Sequence record: NC_041878.1
DNA length: 64,000 nt
Reading direction: 5' to 3' (one strand)
Positions 1 through 64,000 of this stretch are shown here, in pieces. Position numbers and translations under genes: made by a program. The notes under the pieces were generated by a model that did no database searches, was not told where the DNA came from, and saw only the letters and a list, made by a program, of their open reading frames with translations. Every line of letters starts with the position of its first letter. The stretch's first letter is position 1.

Positions 1-33
1 GGACAACGCATTTAAATTTATTCGGAGTTTGTA

Positions 34-336
34 ATGAAAGGTTTTGTTGTTTCGGTTATTCTTGCTGCTGCTTTTACTTGGGGAATTACTGCAATTATTG
101 GTTCAGTAAAGAGTACTGAGCATCAGAACGTTTATTATAATGTCGGACGAGTTGTATCGTTAGGTCAATGCAAAGATGGTACTTGTTCATATGGATATAC
201 AGATATGAACAATGAATTAAAATATGCAACTCTTAGTAGGCCAGTTAGCTTAGGCCAATTGGTCTATCAAGAGTGCTGGTACGAAGAAGCACAAGGGAAC
301 CAGTGCTACGTAGATTATACTCCCAGCAAAAACTAG
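34..336 (+). CDS. hypothetical membrane-anchored/secreted protein
   Basis: 100-aa ORF with GGAG RBS, N-terminal hydrophobic helix and four Cys. Confidence 0.7.
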   Translation: MKGFVVSVILAAAFTWGITAIIGSVKSTEHQNVYYNVGRVVSLGQCKDGTCSYGYTDMNNELKYATLSRPVSLGQLVYQECWYEEAQGNQCYVDYTPSKN

Positions 337-406
337 CAGTATTGCGGAGCATTAAATACTGTTAGGAAAACAAACGTGTTATACACACAAACAAAAAAGG
401 ATGTTT

Positions 407-1846
407 ATGAAAAAATATGTTCTTGACACAAACGTGATTCTTGGTGATCCTAATGCAGTCCTAGCATTTGAAGGAGCACATGTAATTCTTCCGTTTAAAG
501 TACTTGAAGAATTAGATTCCATAAAGAGTCGCAAAGTTGACATTAGTAGAGATGCACGTGTTGCTATTCGCAATATTAGTACAATTCTAGAGAATGCAAC
601 TCACGAAGAAATTTCTACTACTGGTGTTGAAATTTCAAAAACCCATCCACACATCAAAGGTGATACTCGTCTTTTTGTTCTAACTATTGAAGAACTAACA
701 GCAATTCATCATTTGGCAAATCCAGATCTTGGTGCACCAATTGTTGATGCTAAACTAGAAACTTTAATGAAAAGTACTGTACCGGATGATGAAATCATTC
801 TAGTTGCAAAACTATCTCAGTCAGTACTCGTAACTCGTGATATTAATATGCGTATTAAAGCACTAGCATATGGTGTTGAAGTACAAGATTACCGTCATGA
901 TATTACTATTGAAGATTCAGATTTGATTCATACTGGTCATCATCCAATTGAGGGTGATTTTTGGGAACACGCTGGAGACACTGTATATTCCAACCAGGAA
1001 GGTCAAAAACTAATTCAAATGATTCCTGAAGAAGTAATTAAACCATTCTTACCAGAAAATCTATGCATCGGTGATTATATCTATGATGAAGCAGATGGTC
1101 TGTTTGTGTTTGAAGGTTATATTTCACTTCTTGATGCTGATGATGACCGTGATTATTTGGGCTTCAGTGACGTAGGTCAGTCTAAAGCACTATCACGTAA
1201 AGTATGGGATATTAAAGCCAAGAACATTCAACAAGCGATGGCAATTAATAGTATCATGGACAAAGACGTACACATTACAGTACTTCTAGGTTCAGCAGGT
1301 ACAGGTAAAACTCTAATTACCGTTGCTACAGCACTTGAGCTAGTACTAGAGAAAAGAAAATATGATCGTATTATCTTCTCTAAAACTCAAGACTCACAAT
1401 TCGAAGAAATTGGTTTCTTACCAGGTTCTGAAATGGAAAAAGTAATGCCATTCTGTGGTGCTGCAATTGATGCCCTAGAATATCTACACAAAGATGATGC
1501 TAACCCACAAGGTTCAATTGAAGAAATTATGAAACGTAACATCTTCCAATTTAAAGCATTGAACTTTGTTCGTGGTCGTAGTTTCATTAACACAATTCTA
1601 ATTGTTGATGAATTCCAAAACATTACTCCTGCACAGGCGAAGACAATTCTAACTCGTGCTGGTGAGAACTGTAAAGTTATTATTATGGGTAACTTATCTC
1701 AGATCGATAACAAGTTCATCAGTCCAACCAACTCAGGTTTGACTTATGTTACTGAGAAGTTTAAAGATTGGGAAGGTTGCCGCATTATTGAACTAGAAGG
1801 TGTTGTTCGTTCACCACTAGCTGCATTCGCAGAAGAAAATCTATAA
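407..1846 (+). CDS. phoH: PhoH-family ATPase with N-terminal PIN domain
   Basis: N-terminal YVLDTNV PIN motif; Walker A GSAGTGKT; RGRSF and IVDEFQN PhoH motifs; start moved to ATG 407 (GGA RBS). Confidence 0.9.
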   Translation: MKKYVLDTNVILGDPNAVLAFEGAHVILPFKVLEELDSIKSRKVDISRDARVAIRNISTILENATHEEISTTGVEISKTHPHIKGDTRLFVLTIEELTAIHHLANPDLGAPIVDAKLETLMKSTVPDDEIILVAKLSQSVLVTRDINMRIKALAYGVEVQDYRHDITIEDSDLIHTGHHPIEGDFWEHAGDTVYSNQEGQKLIQMIPEEVIKPFLPENLCIGDYIYDEADGLFVFEGYISLLDADDDRDYLGFSDVGQSKALSRKVWDIKAKNIQQAMAINSIMDKDVHITVLLGSAGTGKTLITVATALELVLEKRKYDRIIFSKTQDSQFEEIGFLPGSEMEKVMPFCGAAIDALEYLHKDDANPQGSIEEIMKRNIFQFKALNFVRGRSFINTILIVDEFQNITPAQAKTILTRAGENCKVIIMGNLSQIDNKFISPTNSGLTYVTEKFKDWEGCRIIELEGVVRSPLAAFAEENL

Positions 1847-1855
1847 CAAACTTTT

Positions 1856-1880
1856 GGGGATACTTAGGTATCCCCTTTTT
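1856..1880 (+). terminator. intrinsic terminator
   Basis: GGGGATAC-TTAG-GTATCCCC followed by T5. Confidence 0.85.
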
Positions 1881-1893
1881 AATTGGATAATGT

Positions 1894-2076
1894 ATGAAAA
1901 TTTCATTCCATATTGAAGCTGACCCACAAGTAGGTGATGGTGAAGCAATCTTTTATAAACTGATTAAAGTACGCCAGTACTGGATTTTTAAATTCAAGAC
2001 TCAAATAGCTTATGGTCTTGAAAAAGAAATGCAAACTTTAGCAAATAATCTTACTAAAATTTATGGAACACCATAA
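1894..2076 (+). CDS. hypothetical protein
   Basis: 60-aa ORF with GGA RBS. Confidence 0.6.
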   Translation: MKISFHIEADPQVGDGEAIFYKLIKVRQYWIFKFKTQIAYGLEKEMQTLANNLTKIYGTP

Positions 2077-2092: not shown

Positions 2093-2125
2093 GTACATAT
2101 TAATCGACAAATTGGCATTCATTTC

Positions 2126-2236: not shown

Positions 2237-2250
2237 ATTGGAAAAATAAA

Positions 2251-7176: not shown

Positions 7177-7295
7177 GAGAAATACAAAGCCGTGCATTCT
7201 GGCAAAAACCAGATTTAAGACCGTTTACGCTTCAACGCTAGTACTGGATACTCCCTACTCGTTAGACTACCAAATTCCAGGGCGTTGTATTTCTT
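7177..7295 (+). ncRNA. candidate structured intergenic RNA or leader
   Basis: closing stem AGAAATACAA/TTGTATTTCT; internal TCTGG/CCAGA hairpin; CAACGCT+CTGGA / TCCAG+GGCGTTG stem. Confidence 0.4.
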
Positions 7296-10247: not shown

Positions 10248-10275
10248 AAATGAGTTGAACAAACGTTAATCAAAG

Positions 10276-10323
10276 TACTAAAATCTTGATCTAGATCAAT
10301 ACAAATACCCCTGTATATGGGGT
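10276..10323. promoter_or_regulatory. possible tandem NrdR boxes
   Basis: 16-mers at 10276 (TACTAAAATCTTGATC) and 10308 (CCCCTGTATATGGGGT), 32 bp apart, each missing one key position of the acaCwAtATaTwGtgt consensus. Confidence 0.35.
10286..10299. promoter_or_regulatory. FNR-box-like palindrome upstream of nrdD
   Basis: TTGATCTAGATCAA is a perfect TTGAT-N4-ATCAA, about 42-45 bp upstream of the predicted start defined by TATTAT/TATAAT at 10323-10331. Confidence 0.7.
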
Positions 10324-14601: not shown

Positions 14602-17310
14602 ATGGCAAAACAAGTAAAAGGTACGTTGGATGTAGCCCGATACGCCACTTCTCAAGGACGAAATCTTGCACGGTCAGTGAGTGATTTGAACTTTGATACA
14701 AATGGTAATTTGGTCATTGATGCGTACACGACTGAAGAATTCAACAAAATTATTAGTGTACTACCAATTTCACACTATGGTTCATTTAACTACTTACCTG
14801 CGGGTGTGTATGGTTCATATGAAGGTGCGAGTGATGTTCCTGGTTATCGTTATCGTAAAATATTTGTAGAAGATAGCGGTACATTAACAATTCTACGTTC
14901 AGGCACTAACGGTGCTAAGCGTGGATTGTATTATTCATTTTTGGATAATATATTAACGACAACAAACTTAAACACAGCTATTAACACTAATAAAGAGTAC
15001 AAGCCAGGATATTTTGGTAGTTCTTATACTGCTAAAATGGCGTATGCCAGTGATGCTAGAATATGTGCAGGTATTGCACTTAATGCGTCAGGTGATGCAT
15101 ATACATTTATTTCATGGATGAATAATACATTAAACGATACCCAACACGTAGGTTCAATTGTACCAGCAAGTACTATACAACCTAATGGTGGAACAATGCG
15201 TTTCGTAATGACAGGAAATACTGAGATTTACTTCTTCAATGAAGTCAGTAATGGTAATGAATTGGTAATTGAATTACGTTCTGTTCCAATTTCTCAAGTC
15301 CGTGCATCTGCTACAACTTTAACTGTAACTGAATATGCCAACTGGACAACAAATGGTTTTTATGGTGAAGCTATCGCCAACCGAAATATAGTACTTAACA
15401 AGATGAAATTTAGTTCTAATGCTGCCGATAAACCATATATGTTAACTCCATCAACAACTACAAGCACTGAACCATATATGACAGGTGTGGATTTGTATGC
15501 TGCACAAAATGCTTCTGGTACAATTCGATTGCGTGTTGTTGGAGATGCGTGGTGTACAACTGTGTCAAGAAATACACGACCTAAACATAGCTATAGTTTT
15601 TTACTAAACCCTAGTACTAAAGTGGCTACATTAGAAGCCGGAAATACAGCCCCATTAACAATTACAGATCCTGGTTCTGGCACTGCATTAAACGTTGCTG
15701 GAAATACTTATACAGCAGACCCTATATTAACATATAATGGAAATAGAGTAAACCAAATAATGGGATATTACTATTTTGATAATGGAACCATTATCGCAAT
15801 TGCTACTGAAAACTTAGGAAGTGCTCCGACAAAAATTGAACGTGCTCAATATCCAAATGCAACTTCAATTTTTGATACATTACAAGTTCGTAATCATACA
15901 AGTACCAACTGGATTACTGGTTCAATGAATACTGCATTTGGTTCACCAGTAGGTTCTGAAGTTATGAGTTTTGAATGGCTACCTAATAATAGATACAAGG
16001 TTGGTTCAACGATTACTGGAAATGTTTTCAGACAATCTGTTAATCAATATAAACCAAATCCAACATATACATTTGGATCAGTATCTATGGGTACAATCAA
16101 AGGATTTGAACCAACTACAAACCGTTATGCAACAGCATGGAATGTTAACTATAACATTTTCATTAACTACATAAATGGTACGAATGTTACTACTAATGGT
16201 GGAATTTTCATTGAAAATATTCGTCAAAGTACTGCTGTAAGTTATAATGAAGATATGATTGGTACAGGTTCAATGAGTATTAACAATACTCTTTTAACAA
16301 ACTTAAAAAACCAACAACTGGCTAATGCAACATATCCAGTCGATACTTCGAATACGTCAGTACTTACACTATTTGTTCCACAACAAACAGACTGTCCTGC
16401 ATTTGCATTAATTAGTGGAGTTACTACATCATTAACAAACTATCTAAAAATTGTTGAAGTAAATGTTAACACCAGAACTGGTGCTATTACCACATTAACT
16501 TTCAAGAGACTTGTATATGAAGGTGCTGGTGATTATGGTGGAATAGCTTCACCTGCAACTTATGGTATAACTTATGCTTCAGTTGGTATTTCAATTTATG
16601 ACGCTGGTACATTTTATGTCATAGGTGGTGCTGACCCATATATCTATAAAACACAAGGTGACACTAATAGTGTTACATGGAGAGCAAAGGTAACTAAAAG
16701 TACTGGTCAAATAGATCATTTCGAAGTTATGGGTAGATACCAAACACATACACCAAGTGATACACAATTACCTTATGCAGTTCCTGGGGTGGGATTCGGT
16801 TATATTGATTTCGAAAGAAACGCTGCTGATGACCGTGTTCGTATTATTTTCCAACCTACCGGAACAACATTAGCACAATATAATGCATGGGCTGCTGTAG
16901 GAAGTCCAATTCTACTAGCATCACAGGATGTGGCTCAAGGATTTATTATATACTTCACTGAAAATACTTCAGTACTGTTGAGTGGTAAATCATTTACCAT
17001 GCCAATTCAAAACATAAACTTAGCAAACGTTAAGGCAAACCCTGCTAACAGCACATTCCACATTTATGTAACTATGGAAGAAGGTCTTGCCAAGTACTTA
17101 GCTACTGAACAGGTTATTGCAGAAACTGGTACAACAGCGTATAATACATTCTGGATTGGAACTGTAACTACAAATGCTAACCAAATAGAAACAATTAATA
17201 TTTTTAAACGCAGCCGATTAGATGTATTTGGTGCATCACTAGAAGCAGCAGGTTCTTCATTCCCTGTGAGTTATGGATTACCATCTGCAAGCGGTATTAT
17301 TAACTGGTAA
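14602..17310 (+). CDS. large virion structural/fibre-like protein, paralogue 1
   Basis: 902 aa, Thr/Ser/Asn/Gly-rich; shares N- and C-terminal blocks with the next two genes. Confidence 0.75.
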   Translation: MAKQVKGTLDVARYATSQGRNLARSVSDLNFDTNGNLVIDAYTTEEFNKIISVLPISHYGSFNYLPAGVYGSYEGASDVPGYRYRKIFVEDSGTLTILRSGTNGAKRGLYYSFLDNILTTTNLNTAINTNKEYKPGYFGSSYTAKMAYASDARICAGIALNASGDAYTFISWMNNTLNDTQHVGSIVPASTIQPNGGTMRFVMTGNTEIYFFNEVSNGNELVIELRSVPISQVRASATTLTVTEYANWTTNGFYGEAIANRNIVLNKMKFSSNAADKPYMLTPSTTTSTEPYMTGVDLYAAQNASGTIRLRVVGDAWCTTVSRNTRPKHSYSFLLNPSTKVATLEAGNTAPLTITDPGSGTALNVAGNTYTADPILTYNGNRVNQIMGYYYFDNGTIIAIATENLGSAPTKIERAQYPNATSIFDTLQVRNHTSTNWITGSMNTAFGSPVGSEVMSFEWLPNNRYKVGSTITGNVFRQSVNQYKPNPTYTFGSVSMGTIKGFEPTTNRYATAWNVNYNIFINYINGTNVTTNGGIFIENIRQSTAVSYNEDMIGTGSMSINNTLLTNLKNQQLANATYPVDTSNTSVLTLFVPQQTDCPAFALISGVTTSLTNYLKIVEVNVNTRTGAITTLTFKRLVYEGAGDYGGIASPATYGITYASVGISIYDAGTFYVIGGADPYIYKTQGDTNSVTWRAKVTKSTGQIDHFEVMGRYQTHTPSDTQLPYAVPGVGFGYIDFERNAADDRVRIIFQPTGTTLAQYNAWAAVGSPILLASQDVAQGFIIYFTENTSVLLSGKSFTMPIQNINLANVKANPANSTFHIYVTMEEGLAKYLATEQVIAETGTTAYNTFWIGTVTTNANQIETINIFKRSRLDVFGASLEAAGSSFPVSYGLPSASGIINW

Positions 17311-17319
17311 GGAAATCAA

Positions 17320-20070
17320 ATGGCTTATACAATTAAAGGCGATATTCAAGCTACTAGAATAGTAGTTCAAGGAAAAACTGTGGGTGCTGGCATCAGCACC
17401 ACTGATAACAGTATTGTTTATACTGCCGACACGTCAGGTCATCTAGATCTGCCAATTCCTTCTGCATCTGATATAGATTATGTACTAAATCAATTTCCAT
17501 TATCTCAATATGGAGCAATTAATAATAATCCTATCGGTGTTAGCGGAACGTTTGATGGTGGTAGTACTATAGCATATTATTCCAGTATGCCAGTATTATT
17601 GGAAAATGATGGTACGTTAGCATTCTTACGCCCTGGTTCAAACGGGGCAACCATCAACTATTATTATACGTATATTAATACACCAGAAACAAGCACAAAG
17701 CCAAATACTACAATTCAAAAGTATTATACTGGTTCAAGTAAGAATATTATTTTTTATGATTCATATACAAAAGACACGCTAATATATGAAGATATTGATA
17801 ATCATGTAATTCATTTAGTATTAACAAATGGAACTTTACAAAAAAGCTATCACAAAGAAGTAAGTTTTAATAGAACTATTCTTCCATATAATATTATGAG
17901 TGCGTTAAAAGTTGATTCATATGTGTATATTTTTGCATTATATAATCCATCATTTAACTACAACAATCCTATATCTATTAATAATATATCTAACGTTGAA
18001 GCTCAATTTGTTGTATATAGAGTTCCAGTATCACAAATTGAGTCAGGTGGAACTATCAGTAGTATAGAGCAAGTATCTGGAATTAGTGGCACAAATATGT
18101 ACGGAACTGCTGTTACTGATTCAAACGCAATAAAAATTGCTGATACATGGTGCAGTACAAATGAATCGGGAACGCAATCATTTATAAAATATCCTGGTGG
18201 ATTGGGAATCGCAGTATCTCCGATCACATACTCAATTAACGGAGCTGCTAAAGCATATTTCGATGGTACAAATATTATTTTTTCATATTATACTAACTGT
18301 ACATCTACGAATTCATCTGCACGACAAGATACTATGTATGGGTTTACTATTACATTCAATCCATCATCAAAGGCTTATAGTACAGATTTGAGCAATGTTC
18401 CATTAACCGTTTCTGGTGGGTCAACTGGAACCTTAGTTTGGAACAATCCATACTCAATAAATTCAAATAAAATATACGGCACTGGAAACGCAATTTCTGA
18501 TGGTAATTCTAGTTCATGGTATATTAGTGAATCGGGTATACAATATGCAGTGAAAGAAAAATATGTACTTCAAGATTTTTATATGGTAACTCGATGCTCG
18601 ATAAACGGATTTACAAATAAAGCTGATGCATATAAAATACGTAATAGAAGTTTAACATTAACATCTAGTACTAAAGTTCCTGGTGATTATGCTTCTCGTG
18701 TTGGTGATCAATTAACAGGTGGTTGTCCAATTAGTAGTACGCGGATTATGTTCACTGGTACGGGTTCATATCAGGGAGTTAGCTATAATAAGTACAGTCG
18801 TGGGATTGCTGATATTGGTACGGCACATACATACACATACAATTCTCTTGATAGGGGAACTATCGTTGGATATGCACCACAAAATTATCGAGTTCCTTTT
18901 GGTGATACTAATGAATCTTTAACACGTTCAAAGATTTCTTTATGTGATGCGGCAGGGAACGTAAATGCATATGGTTGTGCATTTATAGAAAATAGTGGTC
19001 TTAGTGCTGGTTTTAAATTAAATCCAAACACTCTTTCCTATGACACTACTATCAGTATATCTAACACTACGTTAGTTAACTTAAAAAATTCTATACTTGC
19101 AAATGCAGGAATAACAAATCCAGCCGATGCAAAAATTGGATTATATTATGTTCCAGATAGCTCTTATTGTAAAAGTATTGCTACCGTTGCAGTATATAAT
19201 GGTTCTGGATTAGGTGGGAGATATTTATTTGCAACGGTAGATTGTACTTTATCTGGAACAGTAGTTAATACTGCAACGCTTAATACTGTGTTTGTCAACA
19301 ATCCATATACAAATATGCAGAGTATTAATATTGATTCTAATGAAATATTTGCAAAATCAGGACTGTCATGCGTTAAGTATGCAGATTTTACATATATAGC
19401 TATTAGTGGTCTTTTAACATATCGTGTTCCTGGAGATTCTAACGAATTATCATGTGCTGGTGTAGTTGATGGCAATACAGTTTCTAATGCTATCGTATCT
19501 GCAAGCTACCATGTTAAGGGAAATAGTTCTTCAGCTAGAGAATACAGTTATATTCCGAACTTAGGTTTTGGTTTTTATCTTTATGGAAATACCGACAAAG
19601 GAACTAAGTTGATATTCAAAAACTGTGGTAATACATTAGCACAATTTAACTCAAACATTGTATCTGGTACTGGAACTGATGTTGTTATTTTAGCACAAGA
19701 TATTCCTCAAGGATTTTATATATACTTTACTGAAACTACTCCATTGTTTATAAGTGGGCAATATTTCGATGTGCCTATTTCGGTAATTAGTTTGGATCAA
19801 GTTACTGCATCCCCAGGAAACAAATCTTATTTTATATACATACAATTAGTACTAGGCACTCCACGATATGTTGCAAGCTTGACTGAACTTCCTGAAAGTT
19901 CTACTACCATGTTTATTGGTACAGCTACGACTGATGGAACAAAAGTATCTTCATTAAATATTAAGAAGGTTTCACGTTTCGATGTGTACAGACCAAGCTT
20001 AACACAAATCGGTTCTGCATTCCCTGTAAGTTCGGGTAACCCAACACAGAGCGGAACTATTGGATGGTAA
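17320..20070 (+). CDS. large virion structural/fibre-like protein, paralogue 2
   Basis: 916 aa; LENDGTLAFLRPGSNG and LAQDIPQGFYIYFTE blocks. Confidence 0.75.
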   Translation: MAYTIKGDIQATRIVVQGKTVGAGISTTDNSIVYTADTSGHLDLPIPSASDIDYVLNQFPLSQYGAINNNPIGVSGTFDGGSTIAYYSSMPVLLENDGTLAFLRPGSNGATINYYYTYINTPETSTKPNTTIQKYYTGSSKNIIFYDSYTKDTLIYEDIDNHVIHLVLTNGTLQKSYHKEVSFNRTILPYNIMSALKVDSYVYIFALYNPSFNYNNPISINNISNVEAQFVVYRVPVSQIESGGTISSIEQVSGISGTNMYGTAVTDSNAIKIADTWCSTNESGTQSFIKYPGGLGIAVSPITYSINGAAKAYFDGTNIIFSYYTNCTSTNSSARQDTMYGFTITFNPSSKAYSTDLSNVPLTVSGGSTGTLVWNNPYSINSNKIYGTGNAISDGNSSSWYISESGIQYAVKEKYVLQDFYMVTRCSINGFTNKADAYKIRNRSLTLTSSTKVPGDYASRVGDQLTGGCPISSTRIMFTGTGSYQGVSYNKYSRGIADIGTAHTYTYNSLDRGTIVGYAPQNYRVPFGDTNESLTRSKISLCDAAGNVNAYGCAFIENSGLSAGFKLNPNTLSYDTTISISNTTLVNLKNSILANAGITNPADAKIGLYYVPDSSYCKSIATVAVYNGSGLGGRYLFATVDCTLSGTVVNTATLNTVFVNNPYTNMQSINIDSNEIFAKSGLSCVKYADFTYIAISGLLTYRVPGDSNELSCAGVVDGNTVSNAIVSASYHVKGNSSSAREYSYIPNLGFGFYLYGNTDKGTKLIFKNCGNTLAQFNSNIVSGTGTDVVILAQDIPQGFYIYFTETTPLFISGQYFDVPISVISLDQVTASPGNKSYFIYIQLVLGTPRYVASLTELPESSTTMFIGTATTDGTKVSSLNIKKVSRFDVYRPSLTQIGSAFPVSSGNPTQSGTIGW

Positions 20071-20082
20071 AAGGAATTTTAA

Positions 20083-22833
20083 ATGTCTAAAAAAATCATA
20101 GGTGATATGAGCGTTCAGAGGAACGCTCAATCAAATGGTAGAAACACAATTCGTGATGTTAATAATATAGCCGCTGATGTTAACGGTAATATTAATCTAC
20201 CATATTATAACAAAGAATACATCAATAAAGTAATGTCAACAATCCCACTATCTCGTATTGGAACAATGGATTACCTACCAATGAATATAAATGGTTCATT
20301 TGAAGGTTCTAGTAACTATATTGGGAAAGGGGTATATCCTATTTTATTAGAGAATGATGGTACATTGGTTTATCTTCGTCCGGGTACAAACGGAAGTACA
20401 TTTGGATATTATTATTGCTATGTTTCTAATGCAAGAACCGTACTTAACTTAGCTCCAGTTGTGACTAATGAAAAATTTACACCAACAAATTTTACATCAT
20501 CACACACCTTAGACTCTTTCATAAGTACAGATGCTTCTGAATTATTAATGATGCGTACAAATGATGGAACAAACGATACTTATACATTATCATTAACTAA
20601 CGGAACGATGAATAGCGTTGCACATCAGAATTTAGAGTTCCCAGCAAGCACAATAACTGGTACTGATCCACAATATGCAATGGTTGTTGATAATTTAATT
20701 TATATATTTTGTTTAGATGGATATAGTAACACTAGTGAAATGGCTATATCAGTATACACTTTACCAAAAAATAATATCATATCTGGAACCTTTACTGCAT
20801 TGACTAAGGTAACAGGATTCAGTGGAGTGAATTTATTTGGTACTAGCATCAGTGCTTCTCCAAATATAAAATTAGCTCCTATGTATTTTAGTAATACACC
20901 ATCAGATAATTCATTGTATTGCGTACCAACTGGTAATGTATATAGAGGGTTCTCTTCATTTTGGGGAAATAATGAAGGTACACTTCATGCTGAACGAAAT
21001 GATAGATTAATACGAATTGCATTTGTCCATGCAGCAGAAGCGACAACACAGCAATCAAACACACGTTCGTTGTCGGCAATAAGCTTAGTACTGGACACCA
21101 GCAACAAAAAATATACACTAGACAATACAAATACGGGTCAGGTTACAATAACAACCAATCCCACTACTGGTGCAATAACCTGGAATAATCCGTACTCCGC
21201 TAATATGGAAAATTACTCTGGTCTTTCAGTAAATGGTTCACTAAACCGTGTACCAACTTACGCGACAACTTCAGATGGTGTTCAGTTCACATCTACTGCA
21301 AGACATGATTCATCACCAGAACACTATATAAGCAGATGTAAAATTAATAATTTTGTTTCACGATATAATGCCTGGAACGTTACTACTCGTTCAGTAAATT
21401 CGATGTTGCTTAATATTGTAAATCCAGTGTTTGGTTCTGTAATTGGTGAGAACTTGATTCACCCAACAATTATCTCAAGTTCTAAAATATTAATGCATTG
21501 CAGTGGTACATATAATAATAATATCACAGATTATAACACAAACGTTTATACAACATTATCTGGAAATCCTGATTATGTTTATAAATCAGTATCTACAGGT
21601 GGCACAATAAATGGATTTAAACCAAGTGAAGAACGTGTCATTTTAAATAATCCAGACTATAGATATACTGGTTGTGTAACTATTATGAATCAAGATGGAA
21701 GTACTAAAGTGTATGGTTCATCATTTGTTCAAGATATTAATAAATTCTCTGCGTTAGAGATGAACCAGAATGATTTTTCATACTCTCAACAGATTACGAT
21801 GAATAATACATTACTTAATAATTTAAAACAAGATGTAATGGATTCAGTTACGTTACCGTATCCTGTACTACAAAGTTATATCGTTTTATATTATGTACCA
21901 GATAACTCTTACTCAAAAAGTTATGCTGTTGTTACTATGTTATTTGACGCACCTACTGGTACTGCTAACTCATATCACATACTGTCAGAAGTTGATGTTA
22001 CATTAAGTTCGAATTCTGTTACTGCGTACAATATTTTATCTAGTTACTTAATTAACCGAAATATTGTTGCAAGATCTATTAATACAGGTTTAATTGAACG
22101 TATGGGTGGTATGATAATTGCTAAATATCAAGAATTTACATACGTTGGAATTCCGACACTATTTGCAGTGAATACATCGGCGGGTAATTTCTCATCTTTA
22201 ATTTGTAAAGTTGATAATAGTACTAAAATGATTAAATCTACTCCAAAAATGATTTCAACTGCTTATAACTCAAGCACTGCAAATTCATATCAAGTCGGGG
22301 TAATTCCAAAGTTAGGTTTTGGATTATTTGAAAATGGTGCAATTACAGATATAAAAACCAAACTAGTATTCAAAAACTATGGAACAACAGAAGCACAATT
22401 TGATGCTATGGTGGCGAATCCGGCAAGCAATCCTCTGTCTAGAATAGTTATTGCTGCTCAAGATGTTGCGGAAGGATTTATTATATATTTCACACAACGT
22501 GTTCCTGCTTTTATACAAGGGAATTATTTTGAAATGCCAATAACATCCATTAATTTGAATGATATTACTTCTAATCCATCCAATAAAACTTTTTACTTGT
22601 ATATTACGATTGTAGAAGGTGAGGCGGTATATCAGATTAGTGAGTCGTTGCTTTCTGAAGAATTATATCGTGTATATATTGGTACTATAGTTACTGGTCA
22701 ATCGGCAATTACATCTATCAGTACTGAGAAAGTTACAAGGTTCTTGAACTATAGAACAAGCACGACTAAGCGTGGTTCTGCAATTCCTACGAGTACTGGC
22801 GTACCGTCAGGTACAGGCACTCGTTGGCATTAA
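20083..22833 (+). CDS. large virion structural/fibre-like protein, paralogue 3
   Basis: 916 aa; LENDGTLVYLRPGTNG and AAQDVAEGFIIYFTQ blocks. Confidence 0.75.
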   Translation: MSKKIIGDMSVQRNAQSNGRNTIRDVNNIAADVNGNINLPYYNKEYINKVMSTIPLSRIGTMDYLPMNINGSFEGSSNYIGKGVYPILLENDGTLVYLRPGTNGSTFGYYYCYVSNARTVLNLAPVVTNEKFTPTNFTSSHTLDSFISTDASELLMMRTNDGTNDTYTLSLTNGTMNSVAHQNLEFPASTITGTDPQYAMVVDNLIYIFCLDGYSNTSEMAISVYTLPKNNIISGTFTALTKVTGFSGVNLFGTSISASPNIKLAPMYFSNTPSDNSLYCVPTGNVYRGFSSFWGNNEGTLHAERNDRLIRIAFVHAAEATTQQSNTRSLSAISLVLDTSNKKYTLDNTNTGQVTITTNPTTGAITWNNPYSANMENYSGLSVNGSLNRVPTYATTSDGVQFTSTARHDSSPEHYISRCKINNFVSRYNAWNVTTRSVNSMLLNIVNPVFGSVIGENLIHPTIISSSKILMHCSGTYNNNITDYNTNVYTTLSGNPDYVYKSVSTGGTINGFKPSEERVILNNPDYRYTGCVTIMNQDGSTKVYGSSFVQDINKFSALEMNQNDFSYSQQITMNNTLLNNLKQDVMDSVTLPYPVLQSYIVLYYVPDNSYSKSYAVVTMLFDAPTGTANSYHILSEVDVTLSSNSVTAYNILSSYLINRNIVARSINTGLIERMGGMIIAKYQEFTYVGIPTLFAVNTSAGNFSSLICKVDNSTKMIKSTPKMISTAYNSSTANSYQVGVIPKLGFGLFENGAITDIKTKLVFKNYGTTEAQFDAMVANPASNPLSRIVIAAQDVAEGFIIYFTQRVPAFIQGNYFEMPITSINLNDITSNPSNKTFYLYITIVEGEAVYQISESLLSEELYRVYIGTIVTGQSAITSISTEKVTRFLNYRTSTTKRGSAIPTSTGVPSGTGTRWH

Positions 22834-33770: not shown

Positions 33771-34202
33771 ATGAAAAAACTATATAGATTTGAAGTTGAC
33801 TACGGTAGAAGCGGTAATTTAAGTGGGCTATTTGTAAGTACTGATGAAGATTTAGATTTGCTTAATGACACCACGATTTACTTCGGTGAAGTACTTGGTA
33901 AACATTCTGAAGTTTGGATTGATAACTTCCAATGGCAAGAATATTGTACCGTTGTAAGTGATGATTCAGAAAAAATTGACTGGTTAGTTGATATTTTGGG
34001 ATATTCATTAAGTGGTTTTAATCCTGAAGATTATTATGAGTACTATGATTCTGACGAATATCAAGATGGTTTTGATAGTACTCCAGAAGATGACTGTCCA
34101 TATGAATTGGATGGTGAACGTGCACGTTGGTTCAAGGGATTGCATGATCGTTTGATTCATAATGCAGAATGTGTAGAAGATGAGGAAGAAAGTGAAGATT
34201 AA
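33771..34202 (+). CDS. acidic hypothetical protein
   Basis: 143 aa; DYGRSG...GLF and YFGEVLGKHSEV blocks. Confidence 0.7.
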   Translation: MKKLYRFEVDYGRSGNLSGLFVSTDEDLDLLNDTTIYFGEVLGKHSEVWIDNFQWQEYCTVVSDDSEKIDWLVDILGYSLSGFNPEDYYEYYDSDEYQDGFDSTPEDDCPYELDGERARWFKGLHDRLIHNAECVEDEEESED

Positions 34203-39997: not shown

Positions 39998-40606
39998 TTG
40001 TATAAAATTTGTGGAGTCGGTATCAATGATGCCGACTATAAAGTAACTTTTTATAATAATGATGGAAAAAGAAGCCACTGTCCTTTTTATAGACGATGGT
40101 CGAGTATGATAAATCGGTGTTATAATGGTAAATTTTCATCTTATAATAATTCAGAAGTTTGTGAAGAATGGTTAACTTTTTCTAACTTTAAAGCATGGAT
40201 GGAAACACAAGATTGGGAAAACAAAGAATTAGATAAAGATTTAATGTTTCCTAATAATCAAATTTATTGTCCTGATAAATGTTTATTTGTTCCTAAAGAA
40301 TTAAATTCTTTATTTGTGGATAGTAAATCCAATCGTGGTGATTATGCAATTGGTGTGTCCTTCGAAAAACGAAGAAATAAATTTGAGTCATATATTTCAC
40401 TTAATAATAAGAAAAAACATCTTGGATATTATCCAGATGAATATAGTGCACATTTTCAGTGGCAAATACATAAATTAAATTTGCTAGAAAATAGTTTATC
40501 GTTGTTTTCGGATCAAATATATTTGTCTATTATAAATTTAAGAATTGAAAAATTAAAAAATGATATGGAAAACTCAATTATAACTGAATCATTACATCAT
40601 TTTTGA
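39998..40606 (+). mobile_element. free-standing HNH-type homing endonuclease with AP2-like C-terminus
   Basis: GVGINDA, WSSMINRCY, VCEEWLTFSNF, LDKD, GVSF...KHLGYY. Confidence 0.8.
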
Positions 40607-44538: not shown

Positions 44539-44560
44539 TTGGTACACTAAGGAGTACTTT

Positions 44561-51730: not shown

Positions 51731-51798
51731 ATTTAATCCTCTAATAAATAACATTATACGAATATTCGAATAAACCCAAAATTTTTGGAGGATTAAAT
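51731..51798 (+). promoter_or_regulatory. late promoter within a 15-bp RBS-sequestering hairpin
   Basis: ATTTAATCCTCTAAA (51731-51745) pairs with TTTGGAGGATTAAAT (51784-51798); TAAATA at 51742-51747. Confidence 0.7.
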
Positions 51799-54451
51799 GG
51801 CTGATTTACTATCACCTGGTGTAAGTGTAACAGTTACCGATGAAACTATTAGTTCTACTAGTGGTGCAGGAACAGTACCTTTGTTTGTTATCGCTACTGC
51901 TCAAGACAAACTTGTTACTGGAAGTACTGCAATTGCTACTGGTACTACTAAAGCAAATGCTGGTCAACTAAAACTAATTACATCACAAAGAAATGCTCTT
52001 GAAACTTACGGATCACCTATTTTCCAAGAAAGTAATGGTTCTGTAATTCAAGGCGACGAACTTAACGAATATGGTCTACATGCATTATATAGTTACATGG
52101 GTATTGCTAACCGTGCTTATGTAGTTCGTGCTGATATTGACCTAGCACAATTGGCTCCATCAGGAGTAGCACCAACTGGTCCAGTTACCAATGGTACACT
52201 ATGGTTAGATACAAGTGCAACACAAATCGAAGCGTATGTTTCGAAGATTGCAAACCCACAAAGTTTTTATGATTGGGCTTTAAAAAGCGTTACAATCGTA
52301 AGCGAAGAAGATATTGATGATGTTGATACTTCTGGACTAAATGTTGATGATTTAGTACTACGTCATATTCCTAGTACTGGTCAAATGCTAATGTACAAAT
52401 ATGAAGCTGTTGGTTTAGTTCAGGTAGAAACTTATCTATCACCAATCAACAAAGTTCCAACTGGTAATACTGTCGAAAAAGGTAACATCTGGATTCGTGA
52501 TGGTTATACTAAGAACGGTTCTAACTACTTCGGTACACGTTTTGTTATTAAGCGTTATGCTTCTCTAACTTCCGTATGGTCTGAAGTGAATGTATGGACT
52601 GGTAATAGTTTCTATGAAATTGAAGCAAAATCTGGTCGATTTGACAACACCTACTTTGGTGCACTATTTGATGAAGATAGTAAGAGTTTTTCTCTTTATA
52701 CTAAAGCTGGCTCAATCGCGTCTATCAGTGCACCTGCTACCCCAATTGGTCAAAGTTCTTCATCTCAAGCAACTGCAATCGGCAACCTAACATTCAAATA
52801 CTTGAATAAGTCAGTAACTGTTGTTGGCGTTAAAGTGAATGATATTATCAACACTGCAACTCTAATTGCAAACCTAAACCAAAATGCAGAATTAATTAAT
52901 GCAGGTTTTACATTTACTGGTACTAATTCACTAGTTGTAACAAACAAAAATGGTTATAGTTTCCAAGTTTCTGCAAGTGGACAACAAATCTTCACTCCTA
53001 ATGAACTAGCTAAACTAACTGTTGATAGCAATAACTATGCTCTAGTTAACGTGAACAACCTACGTGTTTCTGCAAGTACTCCAACTGCTAAAGCAGCAAA
53101 CGGAACATACTGGTATAACTTCAGTAACTCTGATTCATTAACTGTTACTCTATATACAGCTAATGTTAGTACTGAAACATGGGATCTAGTAGATGCAGCG
53201 ACTAATCAGTACGTTCAACTTGACGAACCAGCAGCAGACCGTGATTTTTGGGTTCAACCACTATCACAAGGTGTTGATGGATATGTGTTCTATCGTAACG
53301 TAAGTGGTTCATGGGTTAAACTAGACAACACTGACCAAAGTACTTTAAATGGTATGATATTCGATGACTTTACTACTGGTGATGTTCCAAGTGCTGAATT
53401 GTATCAAAATGGAATGCTTGCAGTTGACTTAGGTACAACTGAGGGTGTTGTTAAAGTAATGAAAGACGGTGTATGGACTGTAGCAAGTGGTGTTGCATTA
53501 GATGGTGCTGGCCTATTTGGTCGTGCTGCACAACGTAATATCATTGTTGAAGCTTTAGCGGCTGTTGTTGTAGGTAACGAAGATATTCGTGCTGAAAGCG
53601 TAGACTTTAACCTAATGTGTGTTCCAGGATACTTCGAACTAATTGATGAACTAGTGACACTAAACACTGATCGTAAAGAAACTGCATTCATCGTAACTGA
53701 TGTTCCTGCACGTTTAGCACCAAGTGCAACCGATGTTCAAGCATGGGCGACCAATGCTAACAACGCTGCAAGTAATGGTGATGACGGTCGTATCACATCT
53801 TATGCATATGCTGCACAGTATATGGGATGGTGTCTAAGTACTAACGTTGATGGTTCTGAAATTGCAGTTCCAGGAAGTACTATTGCAATGCGTACCTATG
53901 CTTACAGCGATAGCGTAAGTTATGTATGGTATCCACCAGCAGGTACACAACGTGGAGTCGTTACTAACGCTACTTCTGTAGGTTACATTAATGACGAAGG
54001 TGAATATGCTCCAGTAGTATATAATCAAGGTCAACGTGACACAATGTACGTTAACAAGATTAACCCAATTGCAATGCGTCCTAATCGTGGTCTATTGGTA
54101 TATGGTGATAAAACTCTAGCTCCAGACGATACTTCTGCTCTAAGCCGTGTAAACGTTGCTCGTCTAGTAGTTTATATTCGTCGTCAACTAGAAATTCTAG
54201 CTGAACCATTCCTATTCCGTTTGAATACTGCAAGTACTCGTCAAGAGTTTACTTCAGTGGTTAACAACTTCTTAGCTGAAATTGTTCAACTAAATGGTTT
54301 ATATGACTTCCTAGTAGTTTGTGATGAATCAAATAACACCACAACTCGTATTGACCGTAACGAACTATGGATGGATATTGCACTTGTACCAACTCGTTCA
54401 ATTAACTTCATCTATATTCCAATCCGTTTGGAAAATAGTTTAACTAACTAA
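51797..54451 (+). CDS. tail sheath protein (gp18-like)
   Basis: SPGVSV start; WYPPAG..RG, NKINPI, YGDKTL, RVNVARL, DFLVVCDESNN, IDRNEL. Confidence 0.95.
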   Translation: MADLLSPGVSVTVTDETISSTSGAGTVPLFVIATAQDKLVTGSTAIATGTTKANAGQLKLITSQRNALETYGSPIFQESNGSVIQGDELNEYGLHALYSYMGIANRAYVVRADIDLAQLAPSGVAPTGPVTNGTLWLDTSATQIEAYVSKIANPQSFYDWALKSVTIVSEEDIDDVDTSGLNVDDLVLRHIPSTGQMLMYKYEAVGLVQVETYLSPINKVPTGNTVEKGNIWIRDGYTKNGSNYFGTRFVIKRYASLTSVWSEVNVWTGNSFYEIEAKSGRFDNTYFGALFDEDSKSFSLYTKAGSIASISAPATPIGQSSSSQATAIGNLTFKYLNKSVTVVGVKVNDIINTATLIANLNQNAELINAGFTFTGTNSLVVTNKNGYSFQVSASGQQIFTPNELAKLTVDSNNYALVNVNNLRVSASTPTAKAANGTYWYNFSNSDSLTVTLYTANVSTETWDLVDAATNQYVQLDEPAADRDFWVQPLSQGVDGYVFYRNVSGSWVKLDNTDQSTLNGMIFDDFTTGDVPSAELYQNGMLAVDLGTTEGVVKVMKDGVWTVASGVALDGAGLFGRAAQRNIIVEALAAVVVGNEDIRAESVDFNLMCVPGYFELIDELVTLNTDRKETAFIVTDVPARLAPSATDVQAWATNANNAASNGDDGRITSYAYAAQYMGWCLSTNVDGSEIAVPGSTIAMRTYAYSDSVSYVWYPPAGTQRGVVTNATSVGYINDEGEYAPVVYNQGQRDTMYVNKINPIAMRPNRGLLVYGDKTLAPDDTSALSRVNVARLVVYIRRQLEILAEPFLFRLNTASTRQEFTSVVNNFLAEIVQLNGLYDFLVVCDESNNTTTRIDRNELWMDIALVPTRSINFIYIPIRLENSLTN

Positions 54452-54557: not shown

Positions 54558-55247
54558 ATGGCAAATTTACTGGATAAATATGGTGTTGTTATTCCTGGTG
54601 CAAGCCGTGCACCAATGAAACAGCCTAAGCCAAAGTACCGTTTTCGTGTAGTTTTCTTCGGATTCGGAAATACTGAGGATGGCAACTATATTACATTGGA
54701 TACAAATACCGTTGGTACACCAAGCGTAGAGCACGAAAATATAACTGTTCATAGTTATAACAGTTCTGCACACTACAAAGGCAAATATACATGGAACACA
54801 ATTGAAGTAGCATTCCGCGATTCAGTAGGTAACATGTCATTGAAAGCTTTATGGAACCAAATGCGTAAAGAGTTTAACTACTACTCACAAGAATCTCGTA
54901 CTACTGGTTCTCAGTACAAATTCGAAATGTGGATTCAAGCATTAGACGGCTCTAATAGCGAAAATACCACAAACCTATTCGAAGGTACTTTACATACTTG
55001 GATCTGTCAAGGTTGTTTCATTACTGATTCTAACTTTGGTGATTGGGATTACTCAAGTTCAGAAGCACAAGTTATTACCATGACAATTCAACCTGATGGT
55101 TGTGTGCTAGTTGGACCAGAAGGTCAAGCTCTTGGTGATGAAGTTACTGGTAACGGTACTCCAGAGAACGCAGTTTCTATCACAACAAGTCCTACTGCAA
55201 TTGATGCTGGAACTCTACCTGATTCCAACTTCTACGAAGGACAATAA
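54558..55247 (+). CDS. tail tube protein (gp19-like)
   Basis: follows the sheath gene; PKPKYRFRV, GKYTWNTIEVAFRD, W.CQGCF, DYSSS pattern. Confidence 0.8.
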   Translation: MANLLDKYGVVIPGASRAPMKQPKPKYRFRVVFFGFGNTEDGNYITLDTNTVGTPSVEHENITVHSYNSSAHYKGKYTWNTIEVAFRDSVGNMSLKALWNQMRKEFNYYSQESRTTGSQYKFEMWIQALDGSNSENTTNLFEGTLHTWICQGCFITDSNFGDWDYSSSEAQVITMTIQPDGCVLVGPEGQALGDEVTGNGTPENAVSITTSPTAIDAGTLPDSNFYEGQ

Positions 55248-56107: not shown

Positions 56108-56117
56108 GGAGTACTAA

Positions 56118-60831: not shown

Positions 60832-61767
60832 TTGATTATGAAAAAACAAATTAATGAGGCATCAGTTCGTATCGATGTTCAAGGTTTAGAATCGAATGAT
60901 CTTGAAACTCTATCACGTATGCTTGCACTTGCTGGTCAAGCAGAGAATAAAGGTCCACAAATGGGTGGAATGACTTCTGTTCCTGCAATTGCTCCGCTAG
61001 ATTTAGATAGCATGGGTGGCGAAGATGAAACTCAACCTATTATGAGTCCTGATATGGCTCCTAGTGCTGATGATATGTCAGGTGCTGGGGCTGACGCTCT
61101 AGGCTCAGCAGTCAGCGATTTAGCTGGCTCAGTCACCGATTTCGGTGCAGATTCACTTGACGGCGGCATGGATGATGGTGTACAATCGATGGAAGTCGGT
61201 AGTGAACCTGAATTCGGCTCTGAAGATTTAGATGTGGCTGGCGACGATGATTTTGATATGGATCGTATGTCCTCACTAGCTGGTATTCACGAAAGTCAAG
61301 ATATTGATGAATCTGATGACGTTGCTGATGATTCAGAAGACGAAGCTGACGATGAAGACCAATCTGTTTCAGAAAGTCTCCTACCAGATTTATCTCTTGA
61401 TGAAGATTCTGTAGCTACAGAAGCCGATGCACAAAAAGAATTTGGTCCATTCCGTACTGAATTCGAATGTGTTCAAGATGGACAAAAACAAACTAATGGA
61501 TTCGAAGGCGATAACTTCATTGTAATTCCTAAAGGAAATGCTTTCTATTGGAAACGTACAATGCAAGAAGAAGTTCAAAATGATCCTGAACCTGAATTTT
61601 ATGATGACGAAGGTATTCGTAATTCCCGTCATGCTTATAAAGGAAAACAACCTGGTACTGCATTAGGTGACAATCCACTCGTTCATGAAAATGAAGATGA
61701 TGAATCTGTAGATTCTATCTTTGAATCAATTAACGAGAAATATAAAAAATTCATGGAGGGTCTATAA
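60832..61767 (+). CDS. highly acidic protein (possible scaffold/internal head protein)
   Basis: D/E-rich low-complexity sequence. Confidence 0.7.
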   Translation: MIMKKQINEASVRIDVQGLESNDLETLSRMLALAGQAENKGPQMGGMTSVPAIAPLDLDSMGGEDETQPIMSPDMAPSADDMSGAGADALGSAVSDLAGSVTDFGADSLDGGMDDGVQSMEVGSEPEFGSEDLDVAGDDDFDMDRMSSLAGIHESQDIDESDDVADDSEDEADDEDQSVSESLLPDLSLDEDSVATEADAQKEFGPFRTEFECVQDGQKQTNGFEGDNFIVIPKGNAFYWKRTMQEEVQNDPEPEFYDDEGIRNSRHAYKGKQPGTALGDNPLVHENEDDESVDSIFESINEKYKKFMEGL

Positions 61768-62177: not shown

Positions 62178-62180
62178 CTT

Positions 62181-62555
62181 ATGATACCAAAAACCAACAG
62201 TACTGAATATCAATACCAGGTTTTAAAATCCATCAGAGAAGTTCATGAATTCGATTCTGAACTCTCTGATAAAATGATTTTAATGTCTATTTTTGATAAT
62301 TACAGAACTGGTGGTGGTCTAAGATTGAGTGAGTTGGGGTATCAAATTTGTAACGACAATTCTTTATACGAGTTTCTACCAGTACCGATTAAAAAATCGG
62401 ATCGCAATTCAAACGTTTATACATCATTAGACCGAATTTGCACCACTCCATACTATGTTCGTGGAGATACTTTGTACTTATCAGATGATTTAGTAATCGC
62501 ACAACTTACGTTTTGTTGCGATGACTTTGCTAAATTGTTTGCTGCATTTTTGTGA
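62181..62555 (+). CDS. hypothetical protein
   Basis: 124-aa ORF. Confidence 0.7.
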   Translation: MIPKTNSTEYQYQVLKSIREVHEFDSELSDKMILMSIFDNYRTGGGLRLSELGYQICNDNSLYEFLPVPIKKSDRNSNVYTSLDRICTTPYYVRGDTLYLSDDLVIAQLTFCCDDFAKLFAAFL

Positions 62556-62581
62556 AACGTCTAAAAAAATTGTGGTATAAT
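62553..62581 (+). promoter_or_regulatory. TGAAAC-class promoter
   Basis: TGAAAC-N17-TATAAT with TGTGG extension. Confidence 0.75.
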
Positions 62582-62610
62582 AGCATTGTTAATAGATAAA
62601 TGGATACATT

Positions 62611-62642
62611 AAAAGCACTGAAAACTCAGTGCTTTTCTTTTT
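62611..62642 (+). terminator. terminator-like hairpin
   Basis: AAAAGCACTGA-AAAC-TCAGTGCTTTT plus CTTTTT. Confidence 0.75.
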
Positions 62643-62692
62643 ATCAAATGGATTTGAGTAGTTCAATTATAACTAAGGTGTAAAAGAGAAGT

Positions 62693-64000
62693 ATGAGTGA
62701 CGCAATCAAAGAAGTACCAACAAATATTCTAAGCTATGATCTAAAACCTGCTCAAGTTGTAGAAGCAATGTCTGTGGCTGATGAAGTACATGATAGCTTA
62801 ATGATTTGGGGTTCTCCTGGTATCGGTAAATCCGCAATCGCATTGCAATATGCAAATGAAAATTATCCTCTCCTAAAAAATAATAAAGGCAAACTACATT
62901 ATCTTCTTCAACGTGCCGAAGATCCAGAAGATACATTAGTTACCATGCAAGATTATCATGATTTTAAAGATTCACTATTAGATCAAGAAACAAACTTTAT
63001 TGATTTTCGTTTATCACAAATCGAACCATCAGATCTTCGTGGTATTCCAATTCCAGTAAAAATGTATTATGATGCAAATGGAAAACAAATCCGTGAATCC
63101 GAAATTAGTCTCCACCCTGACTATGTTGAAGAAACTGGAGTTGTATGGGCTTCACCAAGTATTCTCAAATTACCTAAAGATTGGAAAGGCGTAATTCTGT
63201 TTGACGAAATCAACTCTGCAATGCCAATTGTTCAGGCAGCATCTTATCAGTTGATTCTAGATCGCCGTGTTGGTGAACTAGTACTACCAGAAAACGCACT
63301 AATTCTTGCAGCAGGTAACCGTGAAACTGATGGTGGTGTAACGTTTAGTCTAGCAACCCCACTTCGTGACCGCATGACTCACATTGAAATGATTCCAGAT
63401 TATAATGATTGGATTGAAAATTATGCAATTCCAAATATGCTAAATCCTGGTACGATTGCATTTATCAAACAAACTGGTTCGCGTCTATTCAATACACTAA
63501 GTCCTAAAGACCCAAGTCATTCCGGTGGTTCATCACCTCGTTCATGGACACGTGTATCAGATATTGAAAATGTTCGTAAACGTAAAAATACTTCTTCAGC
63601 AGTTTATAAAGCACTAATTGCTGGACGTGTGGGAAGTACTGCTGGTATTGAATATACTACTTATATTGAAAATATGGCTTCACTACCTGATGTGATGGAT
63701 ATTCTAGAAGGTACTGTTACTGATTTTGGTGAACATAAACAAGAAGTTTCAAAAAACTACTTTATTACAATCAGTCTTACACAAAAAATTATCGAATTTG
63801 GTCGTGCTCGTAATGAACGTAAAGAAGTTCCAGATGAAGATTGGGCTAGGTATGTTACTAACTTTATCAAGTTCATTGATAAAGAATTTTCTAAAGACCA
63901 AACCGAACTGATCATTTACTCAATTCGTACAATTACTGATGCTGAAATAAATATCACCTATAATGATGTTCCTGCATTCAAAGACTTTGTACGTAAGTAC
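62693..64000 (+). CDS. MoxR/AAA_5-like ATPase, truncated by the window end (not in ORF track)
   Basis: translated by hand: MSDAIKEV...IWGSPGIGKS (Walker A), DFRLSQIEPSDLRGIP, VILFDEIN (Walker B), AAGNR, PRSW. Confidence 0.85.
   Translation, partial: MSDAIKEVPTNILSYDLKPAQVVEAMSVADEVHDSLMIWGSPGIGKSAIALQYANENYPLLKNNKGKLHYLLQRAEDPEDTLVTMQDYHDFKDSLLDQETNFIDFRLSQIEPSDLRGIPIPVKMYYDANGKQIRESEISLHPDYVEETGVVWASPSILKLPKDWKGVILFDEINSAMPIVQAASYQLILDRRVGELVLPENALILAAGNRETDGGVTFSLATPLRDRMTHIEMIPDYNDWIENYAIPNMLNPGTIAFIKQTGSRLFNTLSPKDPSHSGGSSPRSWTRVSDIENVRKRKNTSSAVYKALIAGRVGSTAGIEYTTYIENMASLPDVMDILEGTVTDFGEHKQEVSKNYFITISLTQKIIEFGRARNERKEVPDEDWARYVTNFIKFIDKEFSKDQTELIIYSIRTITDAEINITYNDVPAFKDFVRKY

Follow-up and report, generated by a model that had tools for sequence, protein, structure and literature searches.

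Of the 4096 possible hexamers, none is as frequent as the palindrome AGTACT in a 64-kb stretch of DNA from Pectobacterium phage vB_PcaM_CBB (NC_041878.1 / KU574722.1; record bases 62001 to 126000, plus strand, 100% identity), hereafter called the window. CBB is a RaK2-like jumbo myovirus of the genus Mimasvirus, with a genome of 378 kb and a terminal repeat of 22,456 bp; the window carries 94 complete annotated genes, lies on the plus strand throughout in its gene content, and is 95% coding. Here, we report that AGTACT is enriched independently of reading frame, that it is constrained at synonymous positions and flanked by symmetric base preferences, that its density changes in a gradient along the genome, that it occupies set positions in early promoters, and that the enrichment is distributed by clade. 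We infer from these observations that a protein binds at AGTACT and acts there. The site may be recognized on duplex DNA by a putative dimeric phage protein specific to this clade, for which it would serve both as an early-promoter operator and as a genome-wide lattice, a reading that we favor tentatively and hold at somewhat short of an even chance.

AGTACT abundance relative to null models

The window contained 170 AGTACT sites, or 2.66 per kb. Dinucleotide-preserving shuffles of the same DNA gave a mean of 17.8 sites (standard deviation, 4.1; maximum, 30), and none of the 100 shuffles reached 170. Markov models predicted 21.5 (order 0), 16.9 (order 1), and 31.5 (order 2) sites, while orders 3 and 4 were uninformative as nulls because AGTACT inflates its own subwords (pentamers). 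Across record bases 1 to 350000 of CBB, to which all genome-scale counts below refer, AGTACT was again the top hexamer, with 1072 copies against ~100 expected. An earlier reading of the window made from its letters alone (the sequence-only reading) had estimated an enrichment of about tenfold; this estimate was borne out at both scales. Its hand counts for the first 10 kb (34 sites) and for the tail sheath gene (9 sites) were exact.

Neither protein sequence nor codon usage accounted for the excess. When genes were shuffled synonymously, keeping the encoded proteins and the codon usage of each gene, 39.3 ± 5.1 sites were obtained compared to the 162 observed in genes (z = 24), and permuting codons yielded 22.6. 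Enrichment therefore persisted under shuffles of the kind on which the sequence-only reading had staked its proposal. The palindromes of the same composition that it had named for comparison (ACTAGT, TGATCA, and TCATGA) were at or below expectation rather than equally frequent. Together with the counts per dipeptide given below, the synonymous and codon-permutation shuffles rule out a codon-pair or composition artifact.

Within genes, AGTACT was found in all three frames (67, 71, and 24 sites), and six copies were intergenic. The frames assigned earlier to individual sites were correct (position 112, AGT-ACT; position 499, xxA-GTA-CTx; position 2522, xAG-TAC-Txx), as was the placement of the sites at 7240 and 10274 in intergenic DNA. 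The claim that no single codon pair explains the motif likewise holds, given its presence in every frame and between genes and the shortfall of the synonymous shuffle (39 versus 162). Codon choice was strongly shifted toward the motif. Ser-Thr dipeptides were encoded as AGT-ACT in 55% of cases (14% expected) and Val-Leu dipeptides in the GTA-CTN, or motif-type, form in 68% (21% expected). Codons ending in A preceded 71 of the 91 GTA-CTN Val-Leu pairs, and 24 of 57 [KQE]-Tyr-[FLSYCW] tripeptides used the motif, where a few per cent would be expected. Thus, the motif was used about half the time where the protein permits it, with an odds ratio of ~7 to 8 in each frame. Ser-Thr and Val-Leu dipeptides were themselves over-represented 1.3- to 1.45-fold relative to their reverse orders, so that the protein sequence itself has been bent toward the motif. 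Along the length of genes, AGTACT was evenly distributed except for a dip in the last 60 nt.

Retention and turnover of sites among relatives

Aligned DNA of CBB and its relative GAP32 is 83% identical. Over this alignment, 93 of 142 AGTACT sites were kept (65%), compared to 40% of phase-matched control hexamers, and retention in excess of controls was seen in all seven relatives compared. Codons at which the amino acid was conserved were also kept more often inside sites than elsewhere (ACT, 83% versus 64%; GTA, 82% versus 62%; TAC, 84% versus 54%; CT-, 96% versus 77%). Site retention and codon retention, along with the shuffles and the use of dipeptides, support the proposal of the sequence-only reading that the site is selected or actively generated.

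Individual sites nevertheless turned over rapidly. In the trio CBB, GAP32, and BF, 44 sites were common to all three phages, and 30, 26, and 43 sites were unique to CBB, GAP32, and BF, respectively. Many of these lineage-specific sites faced counterparts that differed at 2 to 5 positions, at a divergence too great in this trio for single-step polarized inference. With turnover this high, density rather than position is what is maintained.

Flanking bases, spacing, and near-match words

Flank preferences were computed for each frame and corrected for codon-position composition. In all three frames, the base preceding the site (position -1) was enriched for C (1.7- to 2.7-fold) and poor in G (0.2- to 0.7-fold), and the base following it (position +1) was enriched for G (1.4- to 2.5-fold) and poor in C (0.27- to 0.48-fold). 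Further out, T at -4 and A at +4 were enriched ~1.2- to 1.35-fold. These preferences were dyad symmetric in every frame and were repeated in ten relatives (G at -1, 5 to 10%; T at -4, 37 to 50%). As judged from these base preferences, the flanks appear to describe a symmetric footprint of ~14 bp read on duplex DNA.

The spacing between sites was near random (coefficient of variation, 0.89; P = 0.07). No periodicity or regular spacing of intragenic AGTACT was seen, and the sole peak, at 21 bp, came from the promoter pairs described below. Words one mismatch away from AGTACT showed no clear depletion: the two transition neighbors occurred at 1.55 and 0.91 times expectation, and neighbors differing at the outer positions were enriched 2- to 3.4-fold.

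AGTACT density gradient and early promoters

AGTACT density varied along the CBB genome. It was highest in the first 10 kb (7.3 per kb), remained at 4 to 5.6 per kb up to 50 kb, fell to ~2 per kb across the late and replication genes (120 to 250 kb), and climbed back to 3 to 4.3 per kb in the right-hand early region. The use of synonymous opportunities dropped along the same early-to-late gradient, from 0.77 to 0.5 to 0.6. Coding DNA of the early regions was about twice as dense in AGTACT as that of the late regions, and for intergenic DNA the difference was tenfold (~12 per kb early versus 1.2 to 1.9 per kb late), a disparity that a uniform mutational drive would not produce. The 22-kb terminal repeat held 143 sites, of which 77 were intergenic; these 77 sites fell within 6.6 kb of noncoding DNA (11.6 per kb), where ~2 would be expected. 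The densest 500 bp of the genome lay beside its left end (record bases 201 to 700; ten sites), and five sites were packed into 350 bp just inside the right boundary of the terminal repeat (22011 to 22355).

More than 15 CBB promoters of the sigma-70 type carried a pair of AGTACT sites whose starts were 20 to 22 bp apart, mostly 21. For comparison, we used the sigma-70 consensus given in the GAP32 annotation and the CBB paper. The promoters shared an order of elements: an A-rich stretch, an AGTACT abutting the -35 element, a variable spacer, another AGTACT that usually follows a G, a single base, and the -10 element. In one promoter counted by hand, the spacer from -35 to -10 was 17 bp. The first 22 kb of Salmonella phage Munch, which belongs to another genus, showed the same architecture in 12 pairs, so that sites in CBB and Munch together were 20 to 23 bp apart. 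The Munch density also followed the same course (5.9 per kb in the first 22 kb versus 2.0 per kb in the late region). In both phages, then, a palindrome is fixed at core promoter elements across a set of promoters, as in an operator. The composite promoter pattern was found in just 14 of 2.9 million IMG/VR contigs, almost all of which measured 348 to 378 kb; within the 64-kb window, there was no dual-AGTACT promoter. RpoD-like promoters with an UP-like element had been predicted in the CBB paper, which does not mention AGTACT; the link between AGTACT and early promoters is new here.

Distribution among phages and avoidance of other palindromes

Relatives were sampled as syntenic chunks of 20 to 47 kb each, in which the observed/expected ratio of AGTACT was determined. 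The ratio was 8.8 to 11.9 in GAP32, 8.8 to 12.3 in BF, 8.8 in fHe-Yen9-04, 8.5 in K64-1 (Alcyoneusvirus), 7.0 in Hallingskeid, 6.9 in Kaldavass, 6.8 in A4 and 6.6 in SD-1_S14 (both Asteriusvirus), and 6.3 in Munch, such that all sampled enterobacterial RaK2-like genera were enriched 6- to 12-fold. In contrast, the ratio was 0.2 in Pseudomonas phage PA5oct, 0.3 in Agrobacterium phage Atu_ph07, and 0.9 in a Tequatrovirus, and the T4-like Cronobacter phage Cronuts had 0 sites. The host contrast consisted of one 41-kb piece of an E. coli chromosome, with three AGTACT (0.07 per kb); at ~3 per kb, the phage is ~40 times denser than this single sample. The trait is therefore a property of the enterobacterial RaK2-like clade and not of its hosts or of T4 relatives generally. 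No earlier description of AGTACT enrichment was found in the literature; a survey of jumbo phages (PMC7824862) and the papers describing CBB and RaK2 are silent on it.

Other palindromes show the opposite pattern. In 350 kb of CBB, 28 of the 64 palindromic hexamers were absent and one more was present as a single copy; these purged words were expected ~806 times in total and observed once. The tetramer GCGC was likewise missing (0 versus ~293 expected). The window alone had 31 palindromic hexamers with zero copies, and 25 to 31 were missing from each chunk of the relatives. With 28 palindromic hexamers purged and AGTACT the commonest word, AGTACT is the lone exception under extreme palindrome avoidance.

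Single palindromes were also in excess in several other T4-related lineages: GATATC in Cronuts (25 copies in 24 kb; 4-fold), CTGCAG in PA5oct (12 copies in 21 kb; 5.6-fold), and CAGCTG in a Tequatrovirus (3.2-fold). GATATC was enriched 2.3-fold in Hallingskeid and A4 yet was nearly absent from CBB. Small as these samples are, favored palindromes specific to a lineage may be a wider phenomenon.

AGTACT across the genes of the window

The AGTACT field extends over the whole window (1 to 64000), with 162 genic sites and 6 intergenic sites among its 170. Density was highest in a phrog_5848 gene (33771 to 34202, plus strand; 9.3 per kb). Next to it, CBB_169, a DUF5856 gene (33287 to 33727, plus strand), held 6.8 per kb. 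The CBB_169 product is a remote relative of Dps/mini-ferritins that matches a number of solved Dps and Dlp chains weakly; it also belongs to phrog_858 ("starvation-inducible transcriptional regulator") and is conserved across the clade. CBB_169 was among the candidates considered, but it is not specific to the clade. Two of the intergenic sites (32553 and 32812; 32553 to 32817) lie in a 660-bp noncoding stretch upstream of CBB_168/169, and the others are at 7240 to 7245, 10274 to 10279, 44553 to 44558, and 56110 to 56115. The last two overlap Shine-Dalgarno sequences just 5' of a start codon, and both carry G at -1, a flank avoided elsewhere.

The tail sheath gene (51797 to 54451, plus strand; 9 sites) had 3.4 sites per kb. 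CBB_147 to CBB_149, three tandem paralogues of ~900 codons each (14602 to 22833, plus strand), held 16 sites (1.9 per kb) and were individually at 1.1 to 2 per kb, under the window average. The sequence-only reading had treated these genes as a fiber cluster with about 14 sites; the motif is present as it said, but at 16 sites. Two of the three are annotated as structural, and the annotation of their GAP32 homologues notes similarity to a protein of Pseudomonas phage EL. AGTACT was altogether missing from seven genes of more than 500 nt, including those at 39998 to 40606, 60838 to 61767, and 54558 to 55247. Among these AGTACT-free genes are a structural gene without a GAP32 counterpart and CBB_182, an HNH endonuclease gene (39998 to 40606, plus strand) that is probably a recent arrival. 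The pattern is as expected if newly acquired DNA has yet to gain the motif. The window was also scanned for tRNA genes and Rfam families, and it contained neither.

A possible operator and genome-wide lattice

If AGTACT is the recognition site of a clade-specific dimeric protein, its two roles could be connected as follows. At early promoters, two sites are separated by roughly two turns of the helix, with one abutting the -35 element and one just upstream of -10, which is the geometry of an operator that would switch these promoters on or off. The ~1000 further copies would be kept by weak selection on each site, at an odds ratio of ~7 to 8 per synonymous opportunity. The result would be a lattice for the protein, with its greatest density in the early regions and at the end of the genome.

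Several points weigh against this proposal. No cognate DNA-binding protein was found: the sole annotated helix-turn-helix candidate, CBB_468 (HTH_37), occurs in Mimasvirus only and is thereby ruled out as a clade-wide binder. A lattice of ~1000 sites would call for a protein present in large amounts, and this clade has no known protein of that kind. A binder supplied by the host was also considered. The site of the nucleoid-occlusion protein SlmA is a 12-bp palindrome with AGTACT at its center, and its half-site requires G, T, A, and G at positions 1, 2, 4, and 5 (PMC3020112). However, no full site of this kind (SlmA-binding sequence [SBS]) was present in 350 kb of CBB, and SBS-type flanks around AGTACT were depleted ~2-fold (21 + 14 observed versus 39 + 33 expected); with the required G and T flanks absent or depleted, host SlmA is ruled out as the binder. 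In addition, the promoter cassettes may be duplicates of one another, in which case the paired sites would look more conserved than they are. Finally, the equilibrium statistics expected under selection are also those expected under biased repair, and a trio of low divergence (BF, pEa_SNUABM_49, and Yen9-04) yielded three events, too few to separate the two.

Alternative explanations

Modification of AGTACT by a phage or host methyltransferase, as an epigenetic or antirestriction signal, had been suggested by the sequence-only reading and now appears very unlikely. The suggestion draws on CBB_157 (26427 to 27287, plus strand; 7 AGTACT per kb), a gene in the window for a methyltransferase of the N4-cytosine type. 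Its product matches Pfam N6_N4_Mtase (1.6e-36), is of the beta class with motif IV SPPY, and has M.PvuII, an N4-cytosine enzyme, as its best solved relative (3.6e-20). Protection by methylation would permit AGTACT to escape purging while 28 other palindromic hexamers are absent, but it accounts for tolerance and not for a tenfold excess. Moreover, tblastn placed orthologues of CBB_157 in Mimasvirus and Eneladusvirus only, with none in Hallingskeid, A4, Munch, or SD-1_S14, all of which are enriched 6- to 7-fold, and K64-1 lies outside the two genera, yet is enriched. Missing from half of the enriched clade, CBB_157 cannot account for enrichment outside these two genera. In a comparison of native and amplified DNA by nanopore sequencing, Kaldavass (enriched 6.9-fold) and Hallingskeid (7.0-fold) were modified only at GATC, CCWGG, and, in Kaldavass alone, TGCAT (PMC11780129), and thus no AGTACT modification was reported in two enriched relatives. 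Phyletic distribution and this published methylome together rule out CBB_157 as the cause of the enrichment. They also point to another product of the enzyme. One of the three methyltransferases listed for Kaldavass, CDS0509, is the CBB_157 orthologue (421 to 1281 of the Kaldavass stretch compared), and the TGCAT mark is present in this phage but not in Hallingskeid, which is without an orthologue. By this subtraction, the extra motif pairs with the extra methyltransferase, and the CBB_157 enzyme probably makes the TGCAT modification; consistent with this assignment, ATGCAT is not purged in CBB.

The remaining alternatives differ in what would read the site. The least probable places it in RNA, with AGUACU in transcripts as a cleavage or binding site, for instance one at which an endoribonuclease hastens the decay of early messages; RegB of phage T4 is a comparable enzyme. 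The twofold higher AGTACT density in the coding DNA of early regions would fit, and with nearly all window genes on one strand, every site is transcribed. However, flanks that are dyad symmetric in every frame suggest a symmetric reader on duplex DNA, the best-positioned copies lie upstream of -10 and are not transcribed from that promoter, and no Rfam family matched in the window. Such symmetry would suit an enzyme acting on both strands, whether the site is a primase start usable on either strand, a preferred cleavage site of the phage type II topoisomerase, or a hot spot for nicking or recombination. Genes for a primase, a helicase, a topoisomerase II, and several nucleases are present in the phage, and the near-random spread provides about one site per 330 bp. 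Even so, we consider an enzyme target distinctly unlikely: it leaves the fixed -35/-10 positions and the early-to-late gradient unexplained, homologues of the replication proteins occur in T4-like phages, PA5oct, and Atu_ph07 without the enrichment, and motif-linked nicks were reported in the nanopore study for Rembedalsseter only, not for Kaldavass or Hallingskeid (PMC11780129). Biased repair or mutational drive, which we regard as unlikely, would convert near matches to AGTACT through mismatch correction or a process tied to recombination and leave the motif without function of its own, the excess in the terminal repeat reflecting more heteroduplex. Very-short-patch repair acts in this way for its own site, and the same has been proposed for the iterated palindrome HIP1. 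Such a drive would fit an enrichment that is genome-wide and frame independent, the high turnover with its many lineage-specific births, the peak density in a terminal repeat that must recombine in each cycle, and recent acquisitions without the site, such as the HNH endonuclease gene. It fits less well with one-mismatch neighbors that are not depleted (1.55 and 0.91, with outer positions up 2- to 3.4-fold) and with the many new sites that arose from ancestors differing at 2 to 5 positions. Nor would a blind drive leave late intergenic DNA at 1.2 to 1.9 sites per kb when early intergenic DNA has 12, or fix conserved promoter positions in two genera. No Vsr-like gene is annotated in the 350 kb, where about half of the genes are without an assigned function and were not scanned. 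Thus, of the three roles offered by the sequence-only reading, the binding lattice gains from the promoter positions, symmetric flanks, and gradient; the methylation mark is not supported; and a repair or recombination signal is less likely than the lattice.

Relation to known systems

The sequence-only reading compared AGTACT to HIP1, the highly iterated palindrome of cyanobacteria, and as a description the comparison is apt. Both are short perfect palindromes that occur far over expectation in all frames and in noncoding DNA and are retained beyond neutral levels, although HIP1 is an 8-mer of cellular genomes and AGTACT a 6-mer of a virus clade. HIP1 has been linked to cognate methyltransferases, whereas two relatives of CBB showed no methylation at AGTACT (PMC11780129), and, unlike HIP1, AGTACT has copies at fixed places in early promoters. 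As a phenomenon, then, AGTACT is a HIP1-like iterated palindrome that fails the methyltransferase association.

Other systems offer partial parallels to the proposed binding site. The phage proteins TF1 of SPO1 and p6 of phi29 bind along the DNA of their own phage in preference to that of the host; their strong sites are found at early promoters or genome ends, and they act as repressors of early transcription. The AGTACT gradient toward the terminal repeat and the sites embedded in promoters are similar, but TF1 recognizes a modified base and p6 recognizes DNA shape and supercoiling rather than a hexamer. Chi, DNA uptake sequences, and the FtsK-orienting polar sequences (KOPS) are short, dense words that are read by a protein machine and mark DNA as self; these words are asymmetric and biased in orientation, whereas AGTACT is self-complementary, spaced nearly at random, and also found inside promoters. 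Restriction-modification systems of the ScaI type share the same hexamer. Phages normally purge such sites, and CBB has done so for 28 other palindromic hexamers and all GCGC, but AGTACT is its commonest hexamer. Like the SBS of SlmA and the Noc-binding sequences (NBS), AGTACT is a palindrome scattered over a replicon, where such sites nucleate a DNA-binding protein (PMC3020112); unlike the tens of SlmA sites per chromosome, there are ~1000 AGTACT per phage genome. By analogy, the mechanism would most resemble genome-coating repressors such as TF1 and p6 or the nucleation sites of SlmA and Noc.

Implications for RaK2-like phages

This clade purges about half of the palindromic hexamers to zero, yet one palindrome is its commonest word. 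Such a pattern implies that AGTACT has a reader, strong and conserved but not yet named, in widespread 350-kb phages of Enterobacterales, several of which are under consideration for biocontrol and therapy. The link to promoters provides a concrete entry to the unstudied temporal regulation of these phages, and the motif as a whole gives the unsolved problem of HIP1 a viral counterpart that is tractable.

A broader and more speculative idea, which we think improbable but worth stating, is that AGTACT density is a "self" label encoded in the sequence, by which a phage factor could distinguish phage DNA from that of the host. Such a factor would set the timing of the early promoters, and the phage genome would be coated, protected, or spared by it. 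The context is one in which these jumbo phages are without the modified bases of their T4-like relatives and have erased nearly all other palindromes of the restriction type. If the site does mark self DNA, it would represent an alternative, for large phages, to base modification and the phage nucleus.

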